Shown piece after piece: positions 6,291 to 33,700 of a stretch of DNA of 64,000 nucleotides. The stretch spans positions 37,386,001 to 37,450,000 of the forward strand of contig CM097886.1 in the NCBI GenBank assembly GCA_044892525.1, given 5' to 3'. The position numbers and the translations under genes were made by a program. A model generated the notes under the pieces. It worked only from the letters and a program-made list of their open reading frames with translations. It made no database searches and was not told the DNA's origin. Every line of letters begins with the position of its first letter. The stretch's first letter is position 1. Source of the stretch: Schmidtea polychroa. Its lineage: Eukaryota.

Positions 6291-6514
6291 TATTATTATA
6301 AAATTGGTATTAGCTTATTTACATTTTATTTTTATCATATAAATATTGCACTAATGATATATTATTGCGTTTGTTTTAGTTGATTATATCATATAATTAT
6401 TCGTAATAAATTTAATTTGTTAATGTGATTTTTTACGACACTAGATTTAGCGTAATCGCTTTGATTAGATTTTTTAAAATTAACTCCTGAAATTATTTAA
6501 TTTAATCTCAAAAC

Positions 6515-6862
6515 ATGGAAGTTCTTCACTTTTATCAAATTGTTCCGTTTTCAAGCAAGCTTAAAAGAAATTTGACTGAGAATAACCTTTTGGATGACAC
6601 TATTATCCCAACTTCAGAAATATGCTATAATATTGAACTAAGAGGAGATGAACTTGACGATGATCAAATTCGAAGATTATTGTGGTTAATTACAAGATCA
6701 GATAATATTAACGATATATCTTCAAAACCAATTAATTTTCAGTTGAAGAAATATAATATGAGCATTGAGATTGGACCCAGATTAAATTTCTGTACTCCTT
6801 TAAGTACTAACGCTGTATGTATTTTGAAAAGTCTGGGATTTAATATGATAAATCGTTTTGAA
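6515..6862 (+). CDS. PFAS: PFAS exon 1
   Basis: MEVLHFY...[16 protein letters not shown]...RFE; donor gttagt at 6863. Confidence 0.85.
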
Positions 6863-9800
6863 GTTAGTTACGATTGATATTTAAATTCTTATTTTCCACA
6901 CATATTTAAAATTAATTCGGAGTTCCTATCATGCTATTTTATAAAGTTGTAAAAATGATAAATCAATTTTGAATTAGTGGATCTTTGAAACATTTGAAAT
7001 TGAATATTTTTATACTTTTGATATCGAGGATTTATTTTAGTCTAAAAATTATTTGAAACGTCCTGCANNNNNNNNNNNNNNNNNNNNNNNNNNNNNNNNN
7101 NNNNNNNNNNNNNNNNNNNNNNNNNNNNNNNNNNNNNNNNNNNNNNNNNNNNNNNNNNNNNNNNNNNNNNNNNNNNNNNNNNNNNNNNNNNNNNNNNNNN
7201 NNNNNNNNNNNNNNNNNNNNNNNNNNNNNNNNNNNNNNNNNNNNNNNNNNNNNNNNNNNNNNNNNNCTAACCCTAACCCAAAATACGAAATAAATTTATT
7301 TTTCCCCAACAATAATTATTAAGTGTAATAATGATCAAATTCACTTGAAAAAGGCAGTGCCGAAAATTCGTGAGTATCAACAAACATCGATATATTACTG
7401 ATTTATAGTCTTCAATATATATGCTGTGAGCTTATAGACTGTAATGTATTGACGTACTTGACTCCAGCAATGATTAATTACTTTAAATTTAGTTCTTCTA
7501 GGTCAGTGGTGTCAAACATACGGTACACAACAGACTTTAAAAAACACTTGAAATAATGTCAATATAATAAAAATATCAATGAATTTATCCTCGTAAATAC
7601 ACGCCTACACGTAATGTTTTGTCTGCAGTCTTTCTTGTATACGATGCTCCAGCCCATCAGTACTTTAAAGTTTGACCAACCTCATTAGTTCATGAAATGT
7701 GTCAAATTTGCCGTCCACACGTAATGTTTTGCATGACAAATGATCATGCAAGACTGTCGACAAATCATTAGTCGTGCGAACGGACCTTAGTGTACATATC
7801 TGATGATCAGACACCAGCAAACGATAATTCACTCGCACCTACGGCAAAGTTGTCGTAATTGTCTAATTTATTATTAGCCATTTATGAAAGTTTGTGGCAT
7901 TTAAGCGCTGTAACTTTTCCAGTTTTGATTGTGTTTATATCTATATTGTTTTTTTTCCTGAAATTATAACCATGTTTTTAATACAAAGAAAAGTTAACGA
8001 AGAGTGTCGGGTTTTGCAGAAAAACTGGAGACTATAGTATTTTTCGCTGGGCATTAATGGAAAGCCGACATGTTTAATTTGTAACAAACAGATTGCTGTT
8101 GCCAAAGATTATAATATTCGAAAACATTATGAAACAAACCATGATTCGAAGTTTAATAAATACAGTGGTAAGTTACGCGAAGATCAAGTTAAACAATTAG
8201 AACAGTCATTGAATAAGCATGGTTAATGAAGTCAGTGATGCTGCAGTTAAGGAAAGTTACAGGATTGCACATGAAATAGCTGTGTCATCGAAGCTTTTTT
8301 TAGAAGCGGACGTCATAAAGAAATGTATGTTGATGTCTTCAGAAGATATTTGCCCGGAAAAAACGTCCAGCTTTTTGCGAACATAAGCTTATCAAGAAAT
8401 ACAGTTGCAGAAAAAATTAATGAAATATCAGAGAATATTAATTGCCAACTTAAGGAGAAAGTTGGATGCTTTACTGCATTTTCAGTTGCGATTGATGAAA
8501 GTACTGATATAACTGATGTTAGCACAAAAAATAAAAAAATGGATAAAAAAATGTATTTAACAGAAGAGTTTGTAGAATTGGTACCAATGAAAGAAACAAC
8601 AATAGCTAGTGACATCTTTGAAAGCTTGATAGGGCACTTGATAAATTAGATGTTGATTGGCCACAACTTGTAAGTTTAACCGCAAATGGATCACCACAAA
8701 TGGTTGGTAGAAAAGCTGCAGTGGCAACAAAATTAAAGGTAAATCTGTTATCTGTGAATCCAAATCAGAAATTTTATAATCTACATTGCATTATACAAAG
8801 AGAAGTATTGTGCAGCAAAATATTAAAAATGAATCACATTATGGGTGTCGTTATAAAGGCAGTGAATTTCATTAGAGCGCGAGGCCTAAACCACAAACAG
8901 TTCAACTGCTTTATGGAGGAAACCAATATGTTGGGTTGCATTTCACAATGATTTTCACTGGTTAATTCGGGGAGTTGTACTGAAGCGATTTTATGAACTG
9001 CACAGAGAAATACAAATGTTTATGGAACTGCAAGACAATAAAGTGCATGAACTTAAAGATGATAAATTGATTCAAGATCTTGCTTTCATGGTTGATATTA
9101 CCGGAAAATTAAATTTTCTGAATACAAAACTTAATGACTCTTCGTACCTTTGAGATGAAATTACAGGTTTTTGAAATGTAGCTAAAAGAGAGTAATCTTG
9201 CACGCATTCCCACCCTGAAGTCCTCACTGAACTTCCAGCTGAAATCATCACAGGAACGTACCGCATCAATATTTCCAACTTGAAGAATGAGTCCTAATAA
9301 CGATTTGCCCAATTTAAATACCTTGAAAAGAACATTGCCATTTTTGAGAATCCGTTCTCGGTTAATGTTAATGAGGCACCAGATCTACTTCAACTAGAAT
9401 TAATTGAGCTCCAGTGTGATTCTGTTTTGAGGAACAAATTTTCCGATGTTGATATTGGCACATTTTATCAATATGCTGGACCAAATTATTCTATATTTAA
9501 ATGTTTAGTTTCAAAGATAATGACCATGTTCGGAAGTACATAAGTATGTGAACAGCATTTTTTCTGTAATGAACATAAGCAAAACTTGGCTTCGCTCGAA
9601 AGTTTCTAACGAGCACCTTGATTTGAGACTGAAGGTTGCTCAGTCATTGGTGATCAAACTTTGATTAACTTGTTAATAGCAAGAGGTGTCAAATGTCTGG
9701 AGGCAACAGTAGCAAGCACTAATGAAATAATAAATAAGAATATATACATCTGATAACGTGAGTAAATTAACTTTTTCTCTCTTATTAAATTTGGTCATCT

Positions 9801-12800: not shown

Positions 12801-15800
12801 ATTAATCCGTTTTTGCATTATATGAATAGTCTACATAAAAACATTGTATTCACATGTGAAACGGGGAAAAATCATCTCTTGCTTTCTTGGATCTGTTAAT
12901 ACAACGTAAAGAAAAACACTTTGAGACAGAGTTTTATAGAAAAACAACTGATACTGGTTTCTATACTTCATCCGAAAGTTTTTGTGAAGTTCATGGTCTT
13001 TGTCTTTTACTTTTGCATGTTCAGTAAAAAGTGTTGACAAATTAGTTGAATTGTTAATGAAGAATGGTTATTCAAAATTATTTTTATTAATTATGGTAAA
13101 AGAGACTGTTGACAAATTTATTAAAAATCCTAAGGATCCATGTTTGAGAAAATCTTGGTGTGATGTTGTTTGAGTGTGTGAGTCTGATGAGTTAAATAAA
13201 TTAATGTGAGTAAGGATGATGAGCTTAAATTTGTGTTAGTATTGCCGTACTCAGAACGTTTTAAGGATTATAAACGGAAGATAAGAAAGCAGTTAGGGAA
13301 TTTAAAATTTAATGAACATATTTTTACCAGTTTATTATTTTAAAATTTTCATTTATTTCAATTATTGACTTTAATTTTAGTAAATTTTGAATTAAAAATT
13401 TTTAAAATCTGAATCCTCACAAATTTTGCATATAAAAGCCAATTTTATTCCATACAGACAGGCGTAGCAGTTACATCTACGAATTAATTTTAAATTAAAT
13501 TTCAAGAGTAAAAAAATCAATGAAAGATACAAACACGTGTTTGTAATTTCTATAATAAAAAAAATACAGACAAGAGATAAAGTAAAGTTTTTTTATGAAA
13601 ATAATTCTTTTAATGAAAGATTTACTACAAGTAAACTTTCATTTAGGAAAAAGAAGAAAGAAATTCTTGAGTTTTAATTATTTATTATTAATTAAATTAT
13701 TTAAATTATATAAATTTTTTTTACAAAATCTTTGATAATGAGTGATTTGCTTAATAAATTTTTAAATCTTGTTAATATTTATTTAATTATTTAATAAATT
13801 TAGCAATTAAAATTAACTTTTTTTTGATAAAATTCACGCAGATAATCAGATAATAATTAAAAATGTGAAATTTTCTGGAAATTTTCTGGACAATAATTTG
13901 TTAGCAGTAATTACCGTATATTTCGGCGTATAAGACGACCCTTAAAGTCAAAAAAATCATCTTTACATAACCAATATTTCATAAGATACCGGGTGTTGCA
14001 ATCTCTAGCCTAGGCTAAACAAACATGGTTTCGTTATTTAGCAGTCGTCTTATACAACCGATATATGATAAATCATAAAAATTTGCTCTAATTTTGTACC
14101 TCGTCTTGTCTGACGGTCGCCTTATACGCCGAAATATACGGTACTCGTTTTTTTGGATGTAAATAATACAAACACACATTATAAAATTTTATATTTTGCA
14201 AAACAGTGTACAAGTTGTGTAAAACGTAGCTTGAAAATTTTAAAGCTATATAGAATCCGAATTTTTTAAAAATAAATTACCACATGAACATTTACAATTA
14301 TTTTGATGCTAAATAAAATCTCGTGCAATGATGCTAAAACAAAAACGAATGGTAATCGATGTTTAAATTGGAGTTCTTTCTGAGATGTAATAAAAATCAT
14401 TTTATTTTTCAAAGTAATGAGTTCTTTATTTTTTCAACATCTTAAATTCGATTAATCGATACTTTGGATGACTTTTTGAATTTTAAATATTGTTCCAAAT
14501 TCAAAAAATCAGACTTGTGTGAAAATAATTATTTCTGTTCTAAAAGTATGAAGTTAATATTTTGTTTTCATTGCAAATCTAATTCATCATTATGTAAAAT
14601 TTAGTACAAAATACTTTCCTCCGATTTCATTAAATGTATTAGAAGCTGCTAAAACATATTCTAAATTGTTTTTTAAATCCGGTTCAAAAGTTAAAGACTT
14701 AATTCCAAATATTTATTTAATAAAATATTGTATAATTTCCAAACAAATTTTCCGCGCTGAATAAAATATTTTCAAAACCATTTATCAAAATATTTCAATA
14801 TTTAAAACATTTTTTAAAAATTTTTCATTAATAAAACTTCTTTTTTAAAAAGCTATTTTACTTTTTAATTTAAAAATTTCAACTTAAAAAATCCAATTTA
14901 AAAATTATTTTAAGTTATTTTAATAGTCAATTATTTACAATTTAAAATTATTTTGATAAACCATTGAAATATTTAACTCTCAGCTGAAAACACCTCACAA
15001 AATGTATTTTATTAAAATATAAAAATTTCTCTTTTATGATTTCAGCTAATGATGGATTTAGATTTTACAGAAATCAATAACCAAGATAATTTCTTTTTTA
15101 AAATATTGGTGGAATGACTAATTTCAAATCATATTTTAAAAGCACTTTAATTAATCATTTTTGAGCATATACTTCAAGAATTCATTTAAATTTAATTTAG
15201 GAACAAAGTTTATTTGATATGCTCACTGAAACACAGAAATACTCTAACCCAAATAATGTTATTGCATTCTCAGATAATAGTAGTGCAATTAAAGGATTTA
15301 CAACTCCGATTCTGTATATAACGGATCCAGCTTATCCTTCAGTGTAAAAATATTTTATTTTATTTAAAATGCCTAAATTAATACAATTAATACACCAATC
15401 CCTCGAATTACGCGGTACCCATTTTACGCGGTTATTATAAATAATATTTTTTTAATGAAATCAAACATATTTAGTGGCAAGTGTCTCTTAAATAATGATA
15501 ATAAACCAAATAAATTTACGTGTTAAAGACATTTCTGAAATTTTACAATTGACCAGTAACTTAGAAAATAAGGTTTTGGCCACTGATCCTGATTATGCCC
15601 GTGCTGTTAAATTCCAGTGAGACATTAAAAGCCTTTGCTCGCAATACAGTGAAATTTACAAAGATTAAAAAAAACAAAACACAAAAATTGATTACAGACT
15701 ATTTAATAAGATGAGAAGAAGAGCACGCTGCTGGATTTGAATCCGATGATAGTAGCGATTTCGAGCCAATCAAAAAGAAAAAATTAGTTGAATTAGAATA

Positions 15801-19286: not shown

Positions 19287-22200
19287 CAGTTGATGAATTT
19301 GATGTTAAAATGTTATTCAAGGAAATGAATTGTTGTCATATTGGTGGTTTGTATAGAAATAAATTTTGTCGTAAATTAAATATTTAAATTAAACTATAAG
19401 TCGTTTTAATTATGGAACAGTTTTTTCAACTTGTAAGTAGTGTGACCACAACAGGAGTTTATTGTTTTAATCTTTATGTATGATTTCAAATTAATAGTTT
19501 GAAAGCTTTATGAAAACTAAATTAAAAATAAATTTATCTTTCATTCGAATTTTTCCTAAAAAATTAAATTTAAAATGTCTTCGTTCACTATTACAACTTC
19601 ATTTATGAAACATACCAACTTTTCAAGATAGATATAAACATTCATTACAATAAGCTTTCCATCAAAAAGCTCCGCTATTTCCCAATATTCACCTGCAATA
19701 CAATCACAATGTTTTTCGGATTTTTTAAACATAAATTATCATCCAATGAAATTAATTTAAAATATCAAATATTACTTTGTTAATATGTGTAAAATAAAAG
19801 GCAACACAAATCTGTTTAATCTAACTAAATCATAAATACCAGATCAAAGGCGAAGAATTTCGATTTTAATTACATTATGTTAATATGTTAATATATTCTG
19901 TAAAAAATTGATAATATCTAAATCGAAATGCCGCTTATATTACATAAGTAAGGAAGCTCAGTTTTGTCTAGAATTCTGCAACAGCCATCAACAGAAATTA
20001 TATTATGAATTGAATATCAGACTTATTTTCATAGACAAATCTAATATAAATTTTCAGACGATGTGTTATAATCTGACTCTTCTTTTAATTAAAATATTAT
20101 AGAATTACCAATGTTATGAATTCACATAAATCTCTAAGTCATATCGATATCGTAAATGTCAAATGATTCATTTCAGAATTTTATCGTCGTTTCAGTTTAT
20201 TTTATTTTGCCTTTGAAAAAGTTTGCTTTCTCAATACAAATTGCCGGTCTTTTATTTTCTGTTTCATTAAATTTTAGTTTACATTATAAAAATATTTTAA
20301 AAACATTTCATTATGACACATAATTGGATATAGTTTATTTTGAATTGCAAATTAAAATTTATCAATTGTGGAATCTATAGCATCTCATATTTTCACACGT
20401 TTTCTGTATTAGAATTCTTTATTTTTTAAAATAATTAAATTTTATACATGACAACCGCTTATTATATATAAAAAATAGAGACTTGCATTCATTCATGTGG
20501 ATTTTCCTTCTCAAATTCAATTAAATTCCATACTTGTTTAATATACAATTGCGTAATTATTAAGGAACTTTGAAACTAAATGATCAGCTTGTTCAATTTT
20601 ATATCTATCATTTTGACTTCTTACAACTTCTTGTATGTTTATGAAACTATTGAATTTTTGCTAACCCTGTTAATAATTTGTAACAAATTGTTTTAATCTA
20701 GTGATTCTAACAAATTATTGTTATCATAATTTTACTTCAACTTTCTTTTTGCATTTTTAAAATGCTGAAATTGTATGAAGTTATAAAATTACATAAAATT
20801 AAAAAATTTCTTAGATTCTAACTCATTTGAGATTTTTCATTTGAAATAAATATTTGTCAAAATAATATTTTTATAATCTGTAGATGGAATAGGATTTGTA
20901 GTTCTATAATAAAATTAATTACAGAAAAGTAAATAACGTTAGTTTAGTATTTTCATCAACAAATGTCGTTTTTAACACTGAATTTACGGACCAGTCTCTG
21001 ATAGATTTTAGAGTATATTCTTAAATCAGCGGTTCCCAAAGTGTGGGTCGCGACCCACTGGTGGGTCGCGAAGCTATTTTCGGTGTGTCGCCAAAAATTT
21101 AATATTTGTATTACTGAGCATATTAATTTGCTTTTACTTAACTTGTCACAATATTTATATATAAGTAGGTTTGCGACAAAAAATTATTGCATATTTTTAG
21201 GTGGTTTAAAAATTAAACTTCTTTTTAGCAAATTTTTGTATTTAGAACTTGTTTTTAATAATCGCATCATAGCAACCATTTTTCTACATTTTAACCAGGC
21301 AACCAAACACAAATAACGGTTAATTAGAAATTTAGGATTACAAACTTTAAATATTCAGACAACCAGTGCAAATTTTGTTTTGGACTAAGTACGGTGTTGT
21401 GTTGTTAATAAAAAAGTTTATATATATTGTTAATAAAAGTGTTTCGTTAATAAAAAAACATAATTTAAAATCAAATGTAAGTATTTTTTAAATTTAGTGC
21501 TATAGTATTTCATGTAATAAATAAAGTTCTTAATATTCTTATTTTTAAAGAACCATTGCTGCGATGGATAAGTGGTTGAAAAACACTCCTGGGAAAAATC
21601 AAACAATTGAAAATGAAAAAGAAAAAGAAGGTTCTGTAGCAACAAAAACAGATAATAAGAGAAAATTTGGTGAGAATCCTTCAACAAGTTCGCAATCATC
21701 AAAACGTGGCAAAAGAAAATATGATTCTGAATATCTAAAATTTGGATTTACATGGAATAGAAAAGAAGATGATCCACGCCCACAGTGTGTTATTTGTCAA
21801 GAAATTCTGGCTAATGAAAGTATGCGACCTAACAAATTAATACGACATTTTGAGACGAAACATTCCGATTTAAAAAATAAGCCTATTGATTATTTTAAAA
21901 CCAAATTACAGGAATTAAATAATTCAAAAAATCTATTTTCTCGCTTCATCAGCATTAATGAAAAGGCTATGTTCGCCTCGTATCTCATTAGTTTGCGAAT
22001 TGCACAATCCGGTAAACCGCACACTATTGGAGAGTCATTAGTACTTCCAGCTATAAAAGATGCTGTTGGAATTATGTTTGGAGAGCAGAGCTTAAAAGAA
22101 GTTGAATCAATTCCACTTTCTAATAACACAGTTGCTCGTAGAATTGATGAAATGTCCGAATGGGTAGAAAATAAGCTTATCCATAGAATTCAAGTTAGTG

Positions 22201-24588
22201 GACTTTTTGCGTTGCAACTGGATGAATCAACCGATGTACAAGGTTTGTCCCAACTAATTATTTTCATACGTTTTATATGGTGCAACGAGTTCTTTGAAGA
22301 CATATTATTTTGTGAACCAATCATTCGAGGAACTGGTGAAATAATTTTTGATACGCTCGACACTTATATAACATTGAAAAAACTGGATTGGAAAAACTGC
22401 GTCGGAATATGTAGCGACGGTGCAAAAGCAATGTGTGGTGCTGTGACACGTTGTCTTCAAAAATGTCCAAATGCAACGTGGACTCACTGCACTATTCATA
22501 GAGAAGCGTTAGTATCCAAAAATATACCAAAAAGTCTAAATACTGTTTTGACCACTGCTATAAAAATTGTAAATTTTATTAAGAGCAAACCATTACAATC
22601 ACGATTATTTCAAAAACTCTGCGAAGAGATGGGAAGTTTACATAAATCTCTTCTGCTGCATACAGAAGTCCGCTGGCTATCGAAAGGCAAAGTCCTGACA
22701 AGACTTGTTGAACTTCGCGAAGAAGTAGCAATATATTTACATGAACATAAACAAGATGAGTACACATCAAATTTGCGCGATGTGAAATATGTAGTTTTGC
22801 TGACTTATTTAGCAGATATATTTTCGAAATTGAACGATTTAAATTTACAATTACAAGGAACAAATGGAATTGATATATTTTCGGTTCATGGTAAAATAAA
22901 AGCTTTTACAAAAAAACTTATGTTGTGGAAAAATAATGTTCAAGAAAATAAATATGACTGCTTTGATACATTCCAAACTTTTATCATTGAAAATGAAGTA
23001 ACGCCCAATAACGATTTAATTTCTTTAATAATTGAGCATTTGGACAGACTTAAAGAAAATTTTGATTTTTATTTCTATGGAGAAATGAAAAATCTAGAAA
23101 AATATACATGGGTTCAAAACCCATTTCAAAGTGGTTTAGTTACCGGTATATCGACGATAGCGGATGAGGAATTAATTGAGCTATTCGAAGATAGTGTTGT
23201 TAAATTACATTTTGACGGTACGAAATTGTTACAGTTTTGGTTATCGGTGCAAAACACATATCCAACTTTACACACCGCAGCGTTAAAAGTATTGCTTCCT
23301 TTCACAACTTATTATCTATGCGAGGTTGCATTTTCGTCAATGATTGCAATAAAAAATAAATATCGCAACAAATTACAGCTATCAAACTCCGCTTAATAAC
23401 AACAAATATAAAAGTAGATGTCGAAGATGTTATTGCAAAAAATAGAAAGCAGGCTCATTCATCTCATTCATCCTATTAATTATTCTTAAATATGCGTGTT
23501 AAATAAATATGTAAATCAACATTTTTAGCTTTTTTCTTGTTTTATTTACAGGTGGGTCGCGAAAACTTTGCGGTCTAAATAGTGGGTCTCGACTGGTAAA
23601 AGTTTGGGAACCCCTGTCTTAAATTATGAAAATATTTATTTTTTATTATCTATTGGCTAGTGACTTGCTTTAATCCGAAATAGGATATATTTTATAAGTT
23701 TTTTATTAGATACATTTGAATTGAAACTTTAAAATGTAATAATTTACATTTGACTAGTATGCTTCCATTTTCGAATTATTGAACGTGGTTTTAGATCAGG
23801 ATTATTATCAAAAAATTGTTTTGTATACTTGGATTTTGCTTGCTCTGATTAACTTAATTAATTTTTTATCTAAAAACTTTTCATGATAAAACAAACTGAC
23901 TTTAGAAAAGTGTCGAAAGTTTTCCAGACTGTGCAAAGAACGCTCATTACGGCACACCATATATATTTTGAGGTCACTTTTATAAACTTTACCAATAGGT
24001 GGATGTGAGCACGGACGCTTTTGATTGGCTAAATAAAATTATGACTCATCCCTCTACTTTTTCAAAAATTTTCAAAGTATTTTGAATCATACAATTATTT
24101 TTCAAAATATGTTTTAACAGCAGTTTTTTTAAAAATTTTTGTAAGATTTACTTTAATGATCTCATTAGTCATTAAATTCATGCATATATTGCACATGAAT
24201 TTGTTAACTTATTCAACTTTAAAAACTTGTCAAAACTTTCAAATCAGGAAAAGCTAAGTATTATTAAAAAGAGCAACAAATTCTCTAAGATGGTATGTTT
24301 CAACATTATTAACAAAATTTTATAATTCAGAAATTCTTATGAAAAAATTAACTTTTATTATGTTATAGAGCAGCATAAGACGAGTATTTTTCAATAAGAA
24401 ACTATAACTTTAAAATCAATTTATAAAAAGTTATAGTTTTCAATGTCTTTGTTCATCATGCGTTTATATTGCACATGTTCTTGTTAATCATGTACCTAAA
24501 TTCCAATGTCTTTGTTAATCATTAAATCTCTATTAATTTCTTTTACATTATTATTTCTTTTATAATCATGATTGTTTAGTTATATGTA

Positions 24589-24647
<59 letters not shown>

Positions 24648-27600
24648 TATTATTATTATTAATATTATTTTTTTATTATTTTATGATTAATTTATTATTA
24701 ACATATTGATATACACAAGAACTTGAAGCTAGAAACACTTTAAAGTATATATAAAATTTCATAAAAACAAATACACTATTAAAAAATTTGTTTAAGAAAT
24801 TTGTTTAAGATTTACAAATAATTAATATGAATAATAATAATTAGTTTATTTTATAATTAAGCTGTCTTCTTTGCACGTTAACAAATCCAGTCCGAATGTT
24901 AATCAATTAGTTATAAAAATTGGCGGTCCAGTTTATCGAATTGGCGTTGGTGGTGGGGCTGCCAGTTCTGTCGAGATTCAAGGTGACAGTAAAAGAGATA
25001 AAGAATTAGATCTTGGTGCAGTTCAAAGAGGTGATGCGCAAATGGAAAATAAAATGAATCGAGTTATTAGAGGATGCATTGATCTGAGAGACCTAAATCC
25101 CATTAAATCTATACACGATCAAGGAGCTGGTGGAAACGGAAATGTTTTAAAAGAATTAGTTGATCCTCTTGGTGCTATCATTGATGCTTCTAATTTTACG
25201 GTTATAATTCTTTATTGATTTTGTTCATATCTAGTCTAACTTATTTTTTACATATAAACTTATTAAATTTTGCCATCATTAGTTATTCATAAATATTCTA
25301 AGATTCTTATTCAATTATAAAAATTGGTTTTAATGAGAACTAAGTGCACACGAAGAACTTTTCATAGTTTCATTAAATTTATGCACATAAGTAAAAAAAT
25401 GTATTCATGGAAAAAGTTAATTCACGATAAATATTTATTGACATTTTCCTAGTTACTAATATATCAACCGTTTATTCATTCCTCCCTCTTCTATATTGTA
25501 TTTGCTCATGGATTTGGAGAATACTTCACTTTGTATTTTGAGTAGTAATTCCATATACTTATCATTCTGTTTGATTACAAGGAAATAATTCGACTTATTA
25601 AAGAATAATAGTCATCTTCCATTACTATGTTAATAATTATTTTTAAAATATTTCATTACATTGTAGTTATTGTAAAACCCCCAAAGCCTCATTTTCGACA
25701 CAAAAAGACAAATTTTTATGAAGAGCCGATATAAGCTGCTCATTAAAAACAATGATTTGTTGAAATATCAAATCTAAATTCAAAGTACCGCCTGAACTTT
25801 CAACTTGCCCATTCATTATAAATATTCGTAAATTGTATTCTAAATATGCATTGGATGGCTCAGTTAAGACTGGAGAAAGTGCTTCGTATATTCTTGAAAC
25901 TAATTCAAATCTCTTATCCAGAGAAATTTCTTCAATCGTTTCCACTAACAAATCTACTTCATTATAATTCTTTCGATCATTAAGATAACACATTAAATCA
26001 TCCGTTGATTCCAAGCTGACCTTCATGAATTCCAACATCAAATTAAAACTAAAATATTAAAAAATCAAATTTTATTTGCAATCAAACAGTCCGACTTAAT
26101 AACTAATATTTTTAAAAAAATCAATTTATTTAAAATTTTTATTATATTAATTTTGCTCCAACTATTATTGAGTTTTAACAACTTTATTAACGACAGGAAG
26201 AATATTTATAATTCTTTGTTCTGACATTGTTGTCACATTATCGCCACTATCACTATGAACATTCTCGAAACTATGTGCTAGATTTAGTTGGATCAGGGCT
26301 AAGTTATTATTTCTCACTAAGGTCCGTATTGATAATCTCATGAACTATCACCAGCCACTGACTAACTAATGAAAACATATATAGCTCTTAAACGCTGCAG
26401 AGTGGTATATTTATTTATTTGAATTATGCTAATATGAAGAATTGAATGCAGATTTTCATTTCTGATCTTTCTGATATTGAAATTCTAATTTATTCGTAGA
26501 AAATGTTTTCATATGTACTTTGATTCCAGTATAATCTGTCTTGAACAGGTTCCGTTTTACATTTTTCTTTTACGAGATTCCCACATTGTAATTCAATGAT
26601 TTCTAATTGAGTATTCGATTAAGATTTCTTCGCATCAACATAAAAGTTGAACTGTAGTTTTAAAAAGTGAACTGTAATTTTAAAAATCTATTGTACTGAA
26701 GGTTTTATGTGATTTTTGCTAGTGTGGGGTTGTAGCTGTTGACTTAATTTCATCTACAAAAGTGTTCGAACATCTGAGTCGTTTCTATGACTGGAGTTCA
26801 GTCACAACTCCAAAACAATCCACAATATGGCCAAACCACATCCGTCACAAGTATAGTTGGTGCTGTGCAGCTTGCGTGAAACTCAAAAACAAATTTTATT
26901 AACCACAGGGCCTGTTAAGTTCCGGATTCCATGGGTACAGGATGCTGATAGAAGACATGATATTCACTATATTCACTAAATTCACTTGAAAAAGGCAGTG
27001 CCGAAAATTCGTGAGTATCTAAAAACATCGATATATTACTGATTTATAGTCTCCAAGCTCTCTTTTTAATAAATTCAATGGGAAAAATAATCAGTGGTGA
27101 AATTCGAAAAAAAATTTCTTATAATACTATATACAGTTAACCCTCCTACAACGCGGTAGATAGGTTCCTAAAAAATGGCACGTTGTAGGAAAATTTCCGC
27201 ATTTTAGTAATCGCATTGTAACGAAACCGCGTTGTAGGAGGGTTGCCTGTATATCGTTTATAATATTCATCCCAACCATCAATTATGCTTAATTTCTGTT
27301 TCATAATTTTATTCCCCCTAACTTGATAAATGAAAAAAATTCAATAAAAATTTAAAGTTATATAAACTAATTATACCCACCCCTCAGAATTACGTATTTT
27401 CGCAAATTTGGAAATTCAACCATTTCTAAAATTTTTATTGTTCAATTACATGCACCGACCTAGCAAACTTCCAATATTGTAAAAATGTTAATACATTTTT
27501 TGAATTTAAATTGAATATTTTTATTTTATGGTTAATTTAGCAAATTTGAAGATTGAATGGGGGTTACTCGTTCTTTTACGGACTCAGGTAAATTTTTTTT

Positions 27601-27764: not shown

Positions 27765-30700
27765 GTGTGTATAAAAATGATCATTATAAAAATTTCAGCA
27801 TTGAAATTTTTAATTTAGGTCTATATAATCTATACTCGTATTAAAAAGCTATTTCTACATGACTCAAATTCATGTTTTAATTATATTAAAGACATTATAA
27901 TCCTAGAATATTCATCAAAGTTTTTAAAGTTTCATTTTTATTTCTAGTTTTCTTACACAATTCATGTTTTTTTAATAGTTAGGAGATCCAACAATTAATC
28001 TTCTTGAATTATGGGGTGCTGAATATCAAGAATCGAACGGTCTTTTAATTGATGAAAGACATTTAGATCAATTTAAAAAAATTTGTGATCGGGAAAGATG
28101 CCCAATAAATGTAGTTGGTAAAGTGACTGGTGATGGAAATATTCGTCTTATAAATTCTGTGGCACTAGAAGAGGAACTTGATCCATCTATTCCATACATA
28201 GTTGATCTGGATTTACGTGTGGTTCTTGGCAAAATGCCCAAGAAAATTTTTTATTTAAAGCACGTGGAGAAGATTTTATCTCCTCTTAAATTACCTTTAA
28301 ATCTTCAAGTAAGTTTATGAATTTTTAATTTAATCATCCTCAAAACTTTTTTTACAATGCACACAGTAAATTCAAATTTGCAGGTGTTTGTTAAAATAAA
28401 TATTCTGATTTTACACCATATCGGCTAAGTCACTGTTGAAATATATCGTTAAATTGTGTAAATTTTACTTATTGGTGTAAAAGTCTTGGTTGGCCTTGTC
28501 CCTATGTACTCGATGTTGGCTACGTCACTGATTTCTGTTGGTTTAATCCAAAATATTCAATTTACTAGTTTATTTTAGTCTCAAATTATGCAAATTTTGA
28601 TATTATCAATTTTCTGAGGTCTTTTGATCTTTCTGAATTATCAAGTTTTACTGTATGGTTAAATAATAAATCAATATAATTTTCTTTGTGACATATCGAA
28701 TTGCTAAGGGTATTACAGGGGTCATCCTCTGACCATTAGTTATACTGGGTTCTCTGAGTAGTGACTTTACTGCATTATTTAGTACATTAACATACAATCC
28801 ATATACAATCTAGAATACATATGTAAATTCAAATTACAAAGATTCGAGTGCAAAGCAATTAAAATTCAAAAAAACAGATTTTGAGCACAACACTTAATTA
28901 AAATCTTGTTTAAATGCAAGATTTAGAAAAATAATTACCATTTTTGGTGGAAATCAAATTTCAAAAAGACCCACAATAAATATTGAAAGGGTAGAATTCA
29001 CGTTTAAGTTAAAATTGAATATTGCTAATAAACATTTAAATTGTATTTATCAGATTACATAAATTTTTATAGAAATATTTAAATTAATAAATTAAAGTAA
29101 GTTTAAAATATAAAAATATATTAAATATTAAACTAAATGACACAAAAACATTAAAGCTTGAAATTTTATGTTTTTAAATCAAAATCTCAAATATTTTGCC
29201 AGTACACAAATACCCTTAAAACAATCCTACTATCAATAATCATGAAGTCAGATCATTTTATTTTACAGAATTTATTTTCTGTCGCTCACCTATTTTATAA
29301 CCAACATATTTTACTGAAAAATTCAGACATTCTTGCGAGGTCTTTTAAATAATGTATATTAAGTTATTATTGTATGTTGAAATCCTTATTTATTCATTAA
29401 TTATGATTCCAGAAAAACTAGTAATTAACAATTTGTTTAAATTTTATTATGATAAATGAACATTATTTGAATTAAGTTTATTTGATGGATTTTATAAATA
29501 CAAAAAGTGTTGTGTCTAATATGGAGACTACTATTGCAAATTTCATCAAACCGCCGGAAACATGACATAATACATGTGTATTTTGTTTTGAAAACAACAA
29601 ATATTGTTGAAGATTAGAGAAGCAAATTTGTCAAAGCCTTTCTTTAAATAAATGATACCAAGAAATATGATTACCTCTCTCGGTGATATCTTCATCTTTT
29701 CAAAATCATTAGATGAACACTAATATTATTTAAAAAGTTTCAAAAAATTAAGTTAGTACATCTTAAAATGTCATTTTACTACAAAAGAAGTAAAGTTTCT
29801 AGACCATATAATCATAAAAAAATACATTACATATGGACGAGATCATAACAGAAACAATTTAAAGTTTTAAACGACCGAATGTCTTCAAAAGTTTGAGGCG
29901 GTAATTCGCCCTAGAAGATCACTATTGCTGATTTATTGAATGATTATTAAGTATTAAACGCATAATGTGGAAGTAAACAAATGAAAATGATAAACAGATA
30001 ATTCTAAAATTTCATTTCGAAATTTAAAACTAAAATTGACATCTTTTTTTTATTAAAGTTTCCTGAGTTTGCTACATCTTTGATATTGAATACATATGCA
30101 AGCTTCATTTATATTATCGTGTATTTTCTCAAAAGAAAGAAATCAAGAAAAACGCATGAATAAACACGAATTAAGCTACTGTAAATAGTCATTATCTACA
30201 TTTTATTTTATGTATATGGTAAAAGGTTTATTATGAAGTGAATTCACTTGAAAAAGGCAGTGCCGAAAATTCGTGAGTATCAAAAAACATCGATATATTA
30301 CTGATTTATAGTCTTCAAGCTCTCTTCTTAATAAATTCAATGGAAAAAATGATCAGTAGTGAAATTGGAAAAAGGTTTTTATTAGGGTTGCCAACTGTAC
30401 GATTTTGAAGCGTAACCTACGCTTTTCGTGCAAAAAACAAACATGTATACGTTATACGCACGCTTTTCATAGATATACGAAAAAATGCGCTTTTAGCTTG
30501 CTGGGATAAAAATATCGTCAATTTTTGGTTCGATGGTGTAAAAAAAATTGCTTTCCAAATTGAAACGGCAGAATGTTTTCCAAATTCATATTTAAATTTT
30601 ATTAATTTATTTAATTTTTATTAATTATTAATTTTGTTTAAGTTTTATTAATTGTTGATTATTATTGCTCTCTATAACCTGTAAGTAAATTTATAATTCG

Positions 30701-33700
30701 AATTTCGAAAAGTAATTTTTAGGACAAAATGAAAATGGGTTGAACAACGAAGTTTCTTTGCCAGAATTGTACATTTATTTTGTACATAATTTGATGAATC
30801 TTTTCCAAAAGGAAATAAAAATAGTAGAAAGTAACTACATTCAAGCACCTCAGGTTTATCGTATTTTCGATGATTTAAGAAAGGAATTAATCTGTCGTAG
30901 AGACAAGCTGTTTTTTGAATTTAAAGTTCACCAAAATATACGACACTTAAGCACATCAGAAAGGAATAAACTAAATACAGAAGGAGTAGAAATTTACAAT
31001 AAAATGCTAACATATTTAAGTAAATGGTTCGATTTTAGCACAGATTCCTTTCTTAATATTTGTAGTTCATTCAACTTGGATGAACAACTATCACTGGAAC
31101 AAGTATCCAAAGTAGCAACTCTGTTCGGAGTAGAATTTGATGGCGATAAACTTTTTTCTGAAGTGCGAATTTTAAATGAAACTATTCCAATATTAACTGG
31201 TACTTGCGTTGAAAAATGGATACAATATTTTAAAATTAACAAAGATTCTTCAATATTGCTTAAACTGTGCAAATATTTATTTGCTGTTCCACTAAACAAT
31301 TGTTACGTTGAACGTATATTTAGCGTAATGGGAAATATTTGAACAAACGAGCGAAATAGACTCCAAACAGATATGGTCAAAGCAGAATTATTAATCAATT
31401 TCAATTTTGGGATTACATGCAGTGAATTTGCTACTTTTATAAAAAAAACACAGATTTAAATAAAAAATTAATCGAGGCAGCTAAATCCACGAAAAAATAT
31501 AAATTTAAAACTAAAAATTAAAAATTATTTCAGTATTTTAGTATGTTTATTTACCTACATTTATAAAAAATATTTGTTTGTTTTTTTATAATAAGAGTTT
31601 TGTTATTTTATCTCAATTTTTATTTATTGCAATTATTTGTCATTTTTGTTACTATATGGTTAAAAGAAATTTGAATGCGCTTTTGGTCGAATCAAAAGTT
31701 GGCAACCCTAGTTTTTATGATATATATGAGAAATTTATATTTCTTTAAACCTTCTTGAAAAATGAATTATTTTTTTTGTTTAGTAAATCGAATAGAGAAA
31801 TTTGCTAAATTTTCAAATACCTCGAAACAATTCATATTATTGAGAATGATATTTAGAAGCAAAGATTTTGCATGTGTTCTCATCTTTAAATATTAATTAT
31901 TTAAAATATCTTTCATTTTTAATTTCATTGTATGAAATAGGTTGAAGATGCTCTTTCACGTGTTTTAAGATTGCCATCAGTTGGAAGTAAACGGTTTTTG
32001 ACAAATAAAGTAGATAGATCTGTTACTGGATTGATTGCTCAACAGCAGTGTGTCGGACCACTTCATACTCCTCTTGCTGACGTAGCGATTGTTGCTTTGT
32101 CATATTTTGATATTGTCGGTGCTGCTACTGCTATAGGAGAGCAACCTATCAAAGTAAAGAATAAAATATTTCTCATTCTTAAACATACAACTATATAGAT
32201 GTTAATAAATGTGAAAGAAGGTGCAAAGTTGTGTGTTATCGAAGCCTTAACTAATTTATGCATGATTCCCATTACGTCATTTGAAGACATTAAGGTTAGT
32301 GGTAATTGGATGTGGCCTGCTAAATTACCAGGAGAAGGTGCTGCTTTATGGGATGCCTGTAATGCATTTTGCAGCTTGCTCAAGGATCTTAAAATAGCAA
32401 TTGATGGCGGTAAAGATTCTTTGAGTATGGCAGCCACAATCAACGATAATACCGTGGTAAAGTCTCCAGGCTCCCTAGTAGTATCTGCATATGTTTGTTG
32501 TCCAGATATCCGACTTGCTGTAACTCCTGATTTAAAAGGAGATGGGTCATTAATATGGATACGGGTGAATAATAAATGATGTATTTGTATTACTTTTATA
32601 TAGATGAATAATCAATATCGCCTTGGAGGAAGCGCATTGGCTCAGGTTTATTGTCAATTAGGAGACAAATGTCCTGAATTTAATAATGTGGAATTATTTA
32701 AAAAGTCATGGAACTGTTTACAGAAAATATTTACGGAAAAGTTGGCGTCAGCAGCTCATGATATCAGTGATGGTGGATTAATCGGATGTATCCTGGAAAT
32801 GGCATTTGCAGGTTTATTTAATTTATTTTCATTTTATTATAAAATACTAAAACAAATTAAGTCCAGAATTTTTAGACTGATAATTAAAAAAATTATTTAA
32901 TTACTTTTAGGCAATGTTGGAATTGATGTAAAAATTAATGCATCTATATCTGATAATGATATCCACAGTTACACTGCAGAAATTTCAATTTTGTTTAATG
33001 AAGAAACCGGGTGGATTATTGAAGTTCCTAAAAATTATTTATCTAGTGTAATCAAAGATTTGGAATCAAACGAATTATTATTTTCTATTATCGGACATTC
33101 ATGTAAACGGTATGAAGTAACTCCGACAGTTTCTTTAACGGTGAATGAATTAAATATATTTACCAATTTTAAAGTAAGTTTTAAACGCCTTGTGTAAGAT
33201 ATATTTATAAATATTAATAAATTGGGATATTTATGGTATAGGGTTTTTAGTTTAAATAGATTTTTTTTTAATTGATGAGTGTTTTTTTTTAATTTATGAA
33301 TATTTTTTTTTAATTGATGAATATTTATAAAAATATTTATTTTGAATTCATTTTTGTAAACACGAGTAAAATGTATATTAACGATAAACCAACAAGATTC
33401 GGTAAATAAATAAAGTTAAAATGAAAATATTTATTCCTCGAATACATTTATACCACCCAAACATTTTATAATATTGTTTGTAACATGCCTCACATAATTT
33501 TCGCATTGTTCTACCGTTAGGATGTTTTTAAAATCATCGATAATTCTCAAAAGCTCGACATCAGTATTTAGTTTTCGTGATCTTACAATACCTTTCCATT
33601 GAGAAAACATGAATTCAATGGGATTGAAAAATGGACTATAGGGTGGTAGAAACTTGTTTTGGTGTCCTTTCGATTCAATAAAGGTTGAAATTTCACTACA

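Follow-up and report, generated by a model that had tools for sequence, protein, structure and literature searches.

A probable minimal hammerhead motif with a U3-A8 core at the end of an abundant Penelope-like element family, present as three fragments in PFAS introns of Schmidtea polychroa

Introduction

What is an identical 37-nucleotide (nt) sequence that recurs three times, always in the same orientation, in the introns of a single gene, and does its location there mean anything? The question is raised by a 64,000-nt stretch of the genome of Schmidtea polychroa (assembly GCA_044892525.1, contig CM097886.1, positions 37,386,001 to 37,450,000 of the forward strand), which is termed the window below and in which positions are counted from its first letter. 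A sequence-only reading of this DNA had proposed that the 37-mer in the PFAS introns is a minimal hammerhead ribozyme of the kind carried by Penelope-like elements (PLEs), working as a dimer and having a compensated U3-A8 pair in its core. This proposal is supported by the PLE context of the repeat and by its comparison with related PLEs, and the 37-mer is very probably the minimal hammerhead motif of a high-copy PLE family, designated here as family A, of which dead fragments lie in the PFAS introns.

The minimal hammerheads of PLEs were characterized by Cervera & de la Pena in 2014 (PMC4209133) by the lack of a closed helix III, a palindrome at positions 15.2-16.2 followed by H17, a conserved base between A9 and position 10.1, a G10.1-C11.1 pair, and a helix I of 4-6 bp, together with a usually long helix II of 6-8 bp that is typical and not required. 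A natural U3-A8 core was described in the same work for the Cercyon PLEs of Schistosoma, with about 1300 hits (PMC4209133), which is the only source in the searched literature that uses the term U3-A8 for hammerheads. In the Poseidon PLE of Anolis named PAc, the C3-G8 pair was found to be essential but replaceable (Frangieh et al. 2024, PMC11167929). Since the motif class and its U3-A8 variant have thus been published since 2014 (PMC4209133), the identification presented here is a sound annotation and not a discovery.

The 37-mer and its fold

The 37-mer stands without mismatch at three sites of the window, and no match was encountered in 100 dinucleotide-preserving shuffles. Its identity at 7339, 26980 and 30242, in PFAS introns and in the sense orientation, was borne out by exact matching and by the exons that are recognized through Pfam and described below. 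Copy 1 (7339-7375, plus strand), located by exact match, descriptor scan and fold, is laid out as follows: positions 7339-7344 pair with 7370-7375 to form a helix I of 6 bp that includes one G-U pair, the core from U3 to A9 (UUGAAAA) occupies 7345-7351 and is followed by an extra A at 7352, helix II is composed of 7353-7355 paired with 7359-7361 (GGC/GCC with the loop AGU), and the GAA at 7362-7364 leads into the palindromic helix III AAUU (7365-7368) and C17 (7369), with the predicted cut at 7369/7370. Copy 2 (26980-27016, plus strand), located by the same three means, and copy 3 (30242-30278, plus strand), located by exact match and descriptor, have their predicted cuts at 27010/27011 and 30272/30273, respectively.

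The proposed mapping of the 37-mer onto a type I hammerhead proved correct as written, and the minimum free energy (MFE) structure computed with ViennaRNA agrees with it. For a 42-nt stretch this structure consists of helix I (6 bp) and helix II (3 bp) with an open core, and it has an energy of -8.5 kcal/mol, accounts for 59% of the ensemble, and reaches z = -2.1 against shuffles. The commonest variant within the motif is a G to A change at 27015, by which the G-U wobble of helix I becomes an A-U pair; it makes up about 19-67% of the contig depth in four runs, which are represented by assembled contigs of public data that are only guessed to be RNA and in which the repeat is present, and it is found in 9-10% of the sampled genomic copies.

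A side observation concerns the 3' strand of helix I just past the predicted cut (7370-7375, 27011-27016 and 30273-30278), which reads GTGAGT and is a perfect 5' splice-site consensus. An intron adjoining the hammerhead has been reported for the Penelope element of Drosophila virilis (PMC4209133).

The Penelope-like element behind the repeat

A 33-nt core pattern of the motif gave 1171 exact matches in the 781-Mb genome, of which 626 are forward and 545 are reverse, whereas the reversed control gave none, and a 148-nt unit compared with the genome returned more than 1000 candidates, those scored being 92-100% identical. The 37-mer constitutes the first part of the terminal unit of family A, which is about 155 bp in length, starts with AAATTCACTTG, and ends with ...GTTCTTATAAT. 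When longer copies were followed upstream on the same strand, a reverse transcriptase (RT) segment with the YIDD motif and pieces of an open reading frame (ORF) for a GIY-YIG endonuclease were encountered, in which Pfam recognized PF01541 (E = 3.6e-7) and, weakly, RVT_1 (E = 0.0026). As this RT/GIY-YIG ORF lies upstream on the strand of the motif, the repeat represents the 3' terminal part of a PLE, in which the motif has the orientation of the ORF. The endonuclease piece matched 5584 candidates in the genome, and in 29 of the 30 loci inspected the unit followed the end of the ORF on the same strand, at a distance of about 180-470 nt and typically about 250 nt.

The insertions terminate at two alternative 3' ends, at unit position ~92-100 or ~150, some 55 nt apart, which correspond to about 60 nt (short) or about 118 nt (long, with a "tail") past the predicted cut site. 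These ends match the organization of Anolis PAc, for which two adjacent internal RT start sites and an optional "tail" have been described (PMC11167929). In many copies, an inverted partial copy of the element's own 5' part, 31-105 nt in length and with a variable join point, abuts the 5' end, and many 3' ends of family A run into (AAT)n or (TA)n; inverted 5'-truncated copies are typical of PLEs, as is an insertion bias toward microsatellites (PMC8557442). The features of a canonical PLE, namely an RT followed by a GIY-YIG domain, inverted truncated copies, and an optional tail, were therefore all found in family A.

Several other identities were considered for the repeat and rejected. A short interspersed nuclear element (SINE) with an RNA polymerase III promoter was dismissed owing to the absence of an A or B box, and a miniature inverted-repeat transposable element or foldback element because the ends are not mutual inverted repeats, the inverted pieces being partial 5' copies of variable length and join. 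A Helitron end was rejected for want of a CTRR terminus, and a minus-strand element with its "head" as the 3' end because the ORF lies on the plus strand.

Fit to the minimal hammerhead class

The window motif shows all published features of the minimal PLE hammerheads except the length of helix II. It is placed on the sense strand in the pseudo-long terminal repeat (pseudo-LTR), that is, the 3' region of a PLE, and its core, UUGAAAA followed by GAA, agrees with the boxes (C/U)3 U4 G5 A6 N7 (G/A)8 A9 and G12 A13 A14. An unpaired base between A9 and G10.1 (A7352) and the pair G10.1-C11.1 (G7353-C7361) are present, and helix III is open, with the palindrome AAUU succeeded by a non-G17 base, C.

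For estimating how often such an arrangement arises by chance, a relaxed descriptor was employed that accepts either state of the core, an optional inserted base, a helix II of 3-9 bp, a palindrome of 2-6 nt, and a helix I of at least 4 bp. On both strands of the window it returned only the three motif sites. On both strands of 12 Mb of second-order Markov sequence with the composition of the window it returned two hits, neither with a helix I of at least 6 bp, which corresponds to a chance rate of about 0.01 per 64 kb, or about 4e-5 per one strand of a 500-nt PLE tail. No match to the Rfam hammerhead models was obtained in the window at the gathering score, nor in the 181 nt around copy 2 with the threshold relaxed to E <= 10, and in a weak test on the genome, RF00163 gave nothing over the cut-off among 73 scored of ~61,000 candidates. 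The failure of the Rfam models is expected, because the motif has no closed helix III.

Among known systems, the minimal hammerheads of PLEs (PMC4209133) are the closest to the motif of family A, with which they share the type I topology, the sense orientation, and the location in a pseudo-LTR near the 3' end of an element that encodes RT and GIY-YIG domains, as well as the palindrome in place of a closed helix III, the extra unpaired base, the G10.1-C11.1 pair, the short helix I, and the occurrence in thousands of mostly solitary copies per genome. The replacement of C3-G8 by U3-A8 is shared with Cercyon of Schistosoma mansoni (PMC4209133). In contrast with the published examples, helix II here has 3 bp and a 3-nt loop rather than 6-8 bp, N7 is A, and the host genome is another one. 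Like the motif of PAc (PMC11167929), that of family A is located shortly upstream of two tail-defining 3' ends; unlike it, it departs from the canonical C3-G8 core, and the cleavage of PAc has been demonstrated only in the presence of the PLE protein. The type I hammerheads of animal satellites and retrozymes (RF00163; PMC7229834) resemble the motif in topology, in a weak helix III that depends on dimers, and in their association with retroelements, but differ from it in that the window motif has the U3-A8 core and is without an Rfam match, loop-loop contacts, or tandem arrays in the window.

Comparison with other Penelope-like elements

The strongest support for the assignment is furnished by related elements. 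A protein search with a 350-aa RT-endonuclease piece of family A in other assemblies yielded matches of 27-47% identity, together with three short partial ones of 68-75%. The DNA comparison comprised seven loci of six related PLE families (33-47% protein identity) for which sequence past the ORF is available; the contig of L083 ends without sequence downstream of the ORF, and the proteins P0004 and P0006 are not part of this comparison. In all seven loci with downstream DNA, the motif was found on the sense strand, 24-150 nt after the ORF. Three of these loci carry U3-A8: L084 has the helix II GCU/AGC, the helix III AAUU, and the helix I UCAC/GUGA; L086 has GCC/GGC, AUAU, and UUGUA/UACAA; and L085, which was found without the descriptor, has a decayed helix II, the palindrome AAUU, and a helix I that starts with CAC/GUG. 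The other four carry C3-G8, namely L080 with GGC/GCC, AAUU, and UCUCU/AGAGA, L087 with GCC/GGC, AUAUAU, and GCCC/GGGC (also found without the descriptor, and with A13 changed to C), and L081/L082 with GCC/GGC, ACGU, and UCA/UGA. The extra A is present in seven of the seven loci and a paired 3-bp helix II in six, the decayed one in L085 being the exception; since both are common to the related families, the short helix II appears to be a lineage trait and not a defect.

The same descriptor, run on about 300 kb of flanking loci from the S. polychroa genome, disclosed three further motif families, designated as B, C, and D. Family C has a CUGAUGA core, an extra U, a 5-bp helix II GAYAG/CURUC that varies in a compensatory manner between copies, the palindrome AUAUAU or AUUAAU, and a helix I that starts with CAC/GUG as in the window motif; at L077 the C-terminal part of a PLE is intact, with an endonuclease that is 32% identical to that of family A, and its stop precedes the motif by about 190 nt. 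Family D is a second U3-A8 family, with UUGACAA, an extra G, a 6-bp helix II GACUAU/AUAGUC, and AAUU, and it ends about 60 nt later in (AAT)n; it was located on the minus strand of L002, about 30 nt beyond a tail of family A, and at L029:1106-1142 and L047:674-712, and no ORF was found for it.

In family B, a stretch resembling the 5' end of U1 small nuclear RNA (..ATACTTACCTGGCG..) is joined to a minimal hammerhead with a canonical core. In this hammerhead, CUGAUGA is combined with the helix II GAGC/GCUC, a palindromic ACUAGU, C17, and a helix I of 6 bp. The family is represented by six copies in tandem or dense arrangement at L031:187-2721 and by the minus-strand loci L011 and L072. It was further observed that at L068 a family A 3' end is followed by a family C fragment within about 50 nt, and that at L077 families A and C stand tail-to-tail, an arrangement suggestive of PLE insertion within or next to the AT-rich ends of other PLEs.

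In an alignment of 12 rows, the 3-8 pair is C-G in six and U-A in six and is never unpaired or mixed, the extra base is present in all 12, and G10.1-C11.1 is present in 11. Of the three outer pairs of helix II, two vary on both sides, and 95.8% of the cells that should pair do so. In shuffled alignments the proportion is 73.7%, with none of 500 as high as that observed, and with slid partners it is 25-52%. The forms encountered are CAC/GUG, GUA/UAC, CCC/GGG, UCU/AGA, UCA/UGA, and AGA/UUU for helix I; GGC/GCC, GCU/AGC, GCC/GGC, GAYAG/CURUC, and GACUAU/AUAGUC for helix II; and, among the relatives, AAUU, AUAU, ACGU, and AUAUAU or AUUAAU for helix III, all of them palindromes. Compensatory helix changes within and between genomes were hence observed, most rows being derived from a descriptor that demands pairing. 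In the protein tree, family A is grouped with P0001 and P0007, all three of them U-A, with a support of 91/91, and the remainder is poorly resolved; on this alignment and tree, the sample would contain between one and three independent switches between C-G and U-A.

Conservation and edges of family A

The earlier statements on how the repeat varies stood in part. The 37 nt are indeed invariant among the three window copies while the downstream sequence varies, but genome-wide this contrast turned out to be a small-sample effect. Across 39-80 genomic copies, the divergence from the consensus amounts to 2.7-4.2% of sites in the motif versus 4.2-6.1% in the next 59 nt, and two sites that are diagnostic of subfamilies, at unit positions 45 and 80, account for most of the excess in the flank; when these two sites are left out, motif and flank decay nearly equally in dead copies, which is no evidence either way. 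The claim of a shared homology that begins exactly at stem I is true of copies 2 and 3. It also applies to about 22 of the 30 genomic copies sampled, whose starts fall no more than three bases from helix I's first base, but not to copy 1 and the remaining ~8 of 30, which extend upstream into the pseudo-LTR of the element. Covariation in the stems is seen across related PLE families but not among the genomic copies of family A, where the variants are scattered singletons.

Objections and alternative explanations

A number of points weigh against the assignment of the motif to the minimal hammerheads. Helix II, at 3 bp with a 3-nt loop, does not have the usual 6-8 bp. No curated model endorses the motif, and the call rests on the descriptor and on comparison. 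A pattern search disclosed no C3-G8 subfamily within family A, in which positions 3 and 8 read T..A in ~1140 copies, C..A in 13, T..G in 17, and C..G in a single one, with ~0.2 expected. The covariation is partly circular, as 10 of the 12 rows were obtained through a descriptor that requires a paired 3-8 and helix II, and the U-A state shared by family A, P0001, and P0007 may represent a single event. With respect to activity, a helix III formed in a dimer would be composed of four A-U pairs and is predicted to be very weak, minimal hammerheads cleave poorly in vitro (PMC4209133), and the cleavage of PAc needs the protein, is dispensable for insertion in vitro, and has left no RNA-seq ends at the cut site (PMC11167929).

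The foremost alternative, to which we assign a substantial probability that nonetheless falls short of an even chance, is that the motif is derived from a hammerhead but is catalytically dead here, in consequence of U3-A8, A7, the 3-bp helix II, and the four A-U pairs of helix III, and that it has been kept for binding of the PLE protein, for marking where the transcript starts or the promoter lies, or simply to provide reverse transcription with a structured end. This would accord with the PAc hammerhead mutants, which have no effect on insertion in vitro, and with the missing RNA-seq ends (PMC11167929), with the Naiad PLEs, which thrive without hammerheads (PMC8557442), and with the coincidence of the motif with the template's 5' end, as about 22 of 30 copies start at helix I. 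However, the related PLEs keep the catalytic U4, G5, A6, A9, and G12-A14 (except for the C13 of L087) together with a non-G17, and the 3-8 pair switches on both sides together, which is not obviously needed for a protein-binding or promoter role.

A chance look-alike, in which an AT-rich transposon end and a small GC hairpin happen to fit a relaxed pattern, is very improbable and close to refuted, although there is no Rfam hit, the core differs in two positions from CUGANGA and has a base inserted, the accepted pattern is loose, and a rate of ~0.01 per 64 kb translates into the order of 100 chance hits in 781 Mb. The hit is situated on the sense strand at the usual place of PLE hammerheads, for which the chance within ~500 nt is ~4e-5, and no fewer than seven further PLE families show the architecture in the same position with other helix sequences, 3-8 never being mixed. 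The idea that the three sense copies have been co-opted as a host-level regulatory ribozyme that cuts the PFAS pre-mRNA, for instance by pairing of the copies at 26980 and 30242, which lie 3.26 kb apart, has scarcely any credibility. All three copies are sense to PFAS, and two copies in one pre-mRNA are what a dimeric minimal hammerhead needs; yet three of three in one orientation (either one) are expected by chance with P = 0.25, the copies are unremarkable representatives of a family that numbers more than 1000 and is evenly split between the strands (626/545), dead copies decay at near-neutral rates, and nothing ties the copies to PFAS.

Proposed working of the motif and the origin of solo units

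By analogy with the published systems, the minimal hammerhead motif of family A would act in transcripts of active elements, where helix I, helix II, and the core would form. Consisting only of the palindrome AAUU, helix III cannot be closed within a single copy; a pair of copies may form a 4-bp intermolecular helix III, as in the dimer model (PMC4209133), and/or the PLE protein may be bound, and the competent dimer or protein-bound motif would then cut after C17. The chance that the U3-A8 version cleaves at all in vivo may be put at about one half.

The first base of helix I is probably the transcript start, a view based on the sharp 5' edge, the snapped-back inverted copies, and the stuttered bases in front of copy 2. 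An RT that reaches the 5' end of its template would leave just such a sharp edge, snap-back copies, and stuttered first bases. For the solo units of 100-155 nt, the probable origin is priming at the tail site that is closest to the 5' end.

A more far-reaching interpretation, which we regard as unlikely, would be that the hammerhead with U3-A8 and a 3-bp helix II marks a distinct PLE lineage with the ribozyme at the very 5' end of the transcript, and that the more than 1000 solo units of 100-155 bp are a self-contained mobile RNA, a SINE-like precursor of retrozymes. The unit would then combine a hammerhead with an RT entry site, being copied from its own 5'-proximal priming site, and the activity of the hammerhead would require pairing with a second copy or binding of the PLE protein. 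If this were true, sense copies within one host pre-mRNA, such as that of PFAS, could occasionally cut it.

PFAS and the insertions in its introns

Three open stretches on the plus strand contain exons of PFAS, a gene of purine synthesis, namely 6506-6874 with the FGAR-AT_N domain (PF18076, E = 5.2e-6), 27979-28317 with AIRS_C (PF02769, E = 9.7e-6), and 32199-32576 with the FGAR-AT PurM_N-like domain (PF22689, E = 3.5e-27). As these exons lie on the plus strand, the three motif copies are intronic and sense to PFAS.

PLE fragment 1 (7280-7415, plus strand), delimited by blastn of the pseudo-LTR and unit against the window and by alignment with longer copies, comprises about 57 nt of the pseudo-LTR followed by approximately the first 79-88 nt of the terminal unit, and it stops near the "short" 3' end. 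Two telomere-type CCCTAA units (7267-7279) adjoin its truncated 5' edge, beside a run of N at 7069-7266. PLE fragment 2 (26978-27133, plus strand) is a solo terminal unit of about 155 nt that has the "long" tail, ends with ...TTCTTATAAT, and has two short tandem repetitions of its initial 7-8 nt in front of it, and PLE fragment 3 (~30240-30389, plus strand) is a solo terminal unit with a decayed long tail. The sequence common to the copies starts two bases before the motif and extends over about 90 nt in all three and about 150 nt in copies 2 and 3. The window copies are accordingly dead fragments in PFAS introns, one of them strongly 5'-truncated and two of them solo terminal units. Their location in PFAS is incidental, as they are ordinary transposon insertions, three among more than 1000, and a role tied to PFAS is not supported.

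Two other features of the window relate to mobile elements. At 12981-13310 (plus strand), a family C PLE fragment matches the region just upstream of the GIY-YIG domain with 81-83% identity, and no hammerhead motif adjoins this fragment in the window. At 21549-23393 (plus strand), an open frame of 615 aa contains a hAT-family dimerisation domain (PF05699, E = 2.5e-4) and is likely a hAT transposase inside a PFAS intron.

Significance

The observations are modestly new in three respects: the U3-A8 core occurs in two families of this genome and in several related PLEs from other assemblies; it is accompanied here by a 3-bp helix II and an extra A; and either core can stand in a near-identical architecture, as in the window family and L080, which share GGC/GCC, the extra A, and AAUU. 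The understanding of how PLE hammerheads act is unchanged by these findings. The annotation of the repeat as the hammerhead-bearing end of a Penelope-like element is settled, and a second, independent set of PLE lineages is added in which C3-G8 has been switched to U3-A8 with the remaining architecture kept. This switch supports the view that minimal motifs are under structural selection, and the window family and L080, which differ at 3-8, provide natural sequence pairs for probing the contribution of the 3-8 pair.

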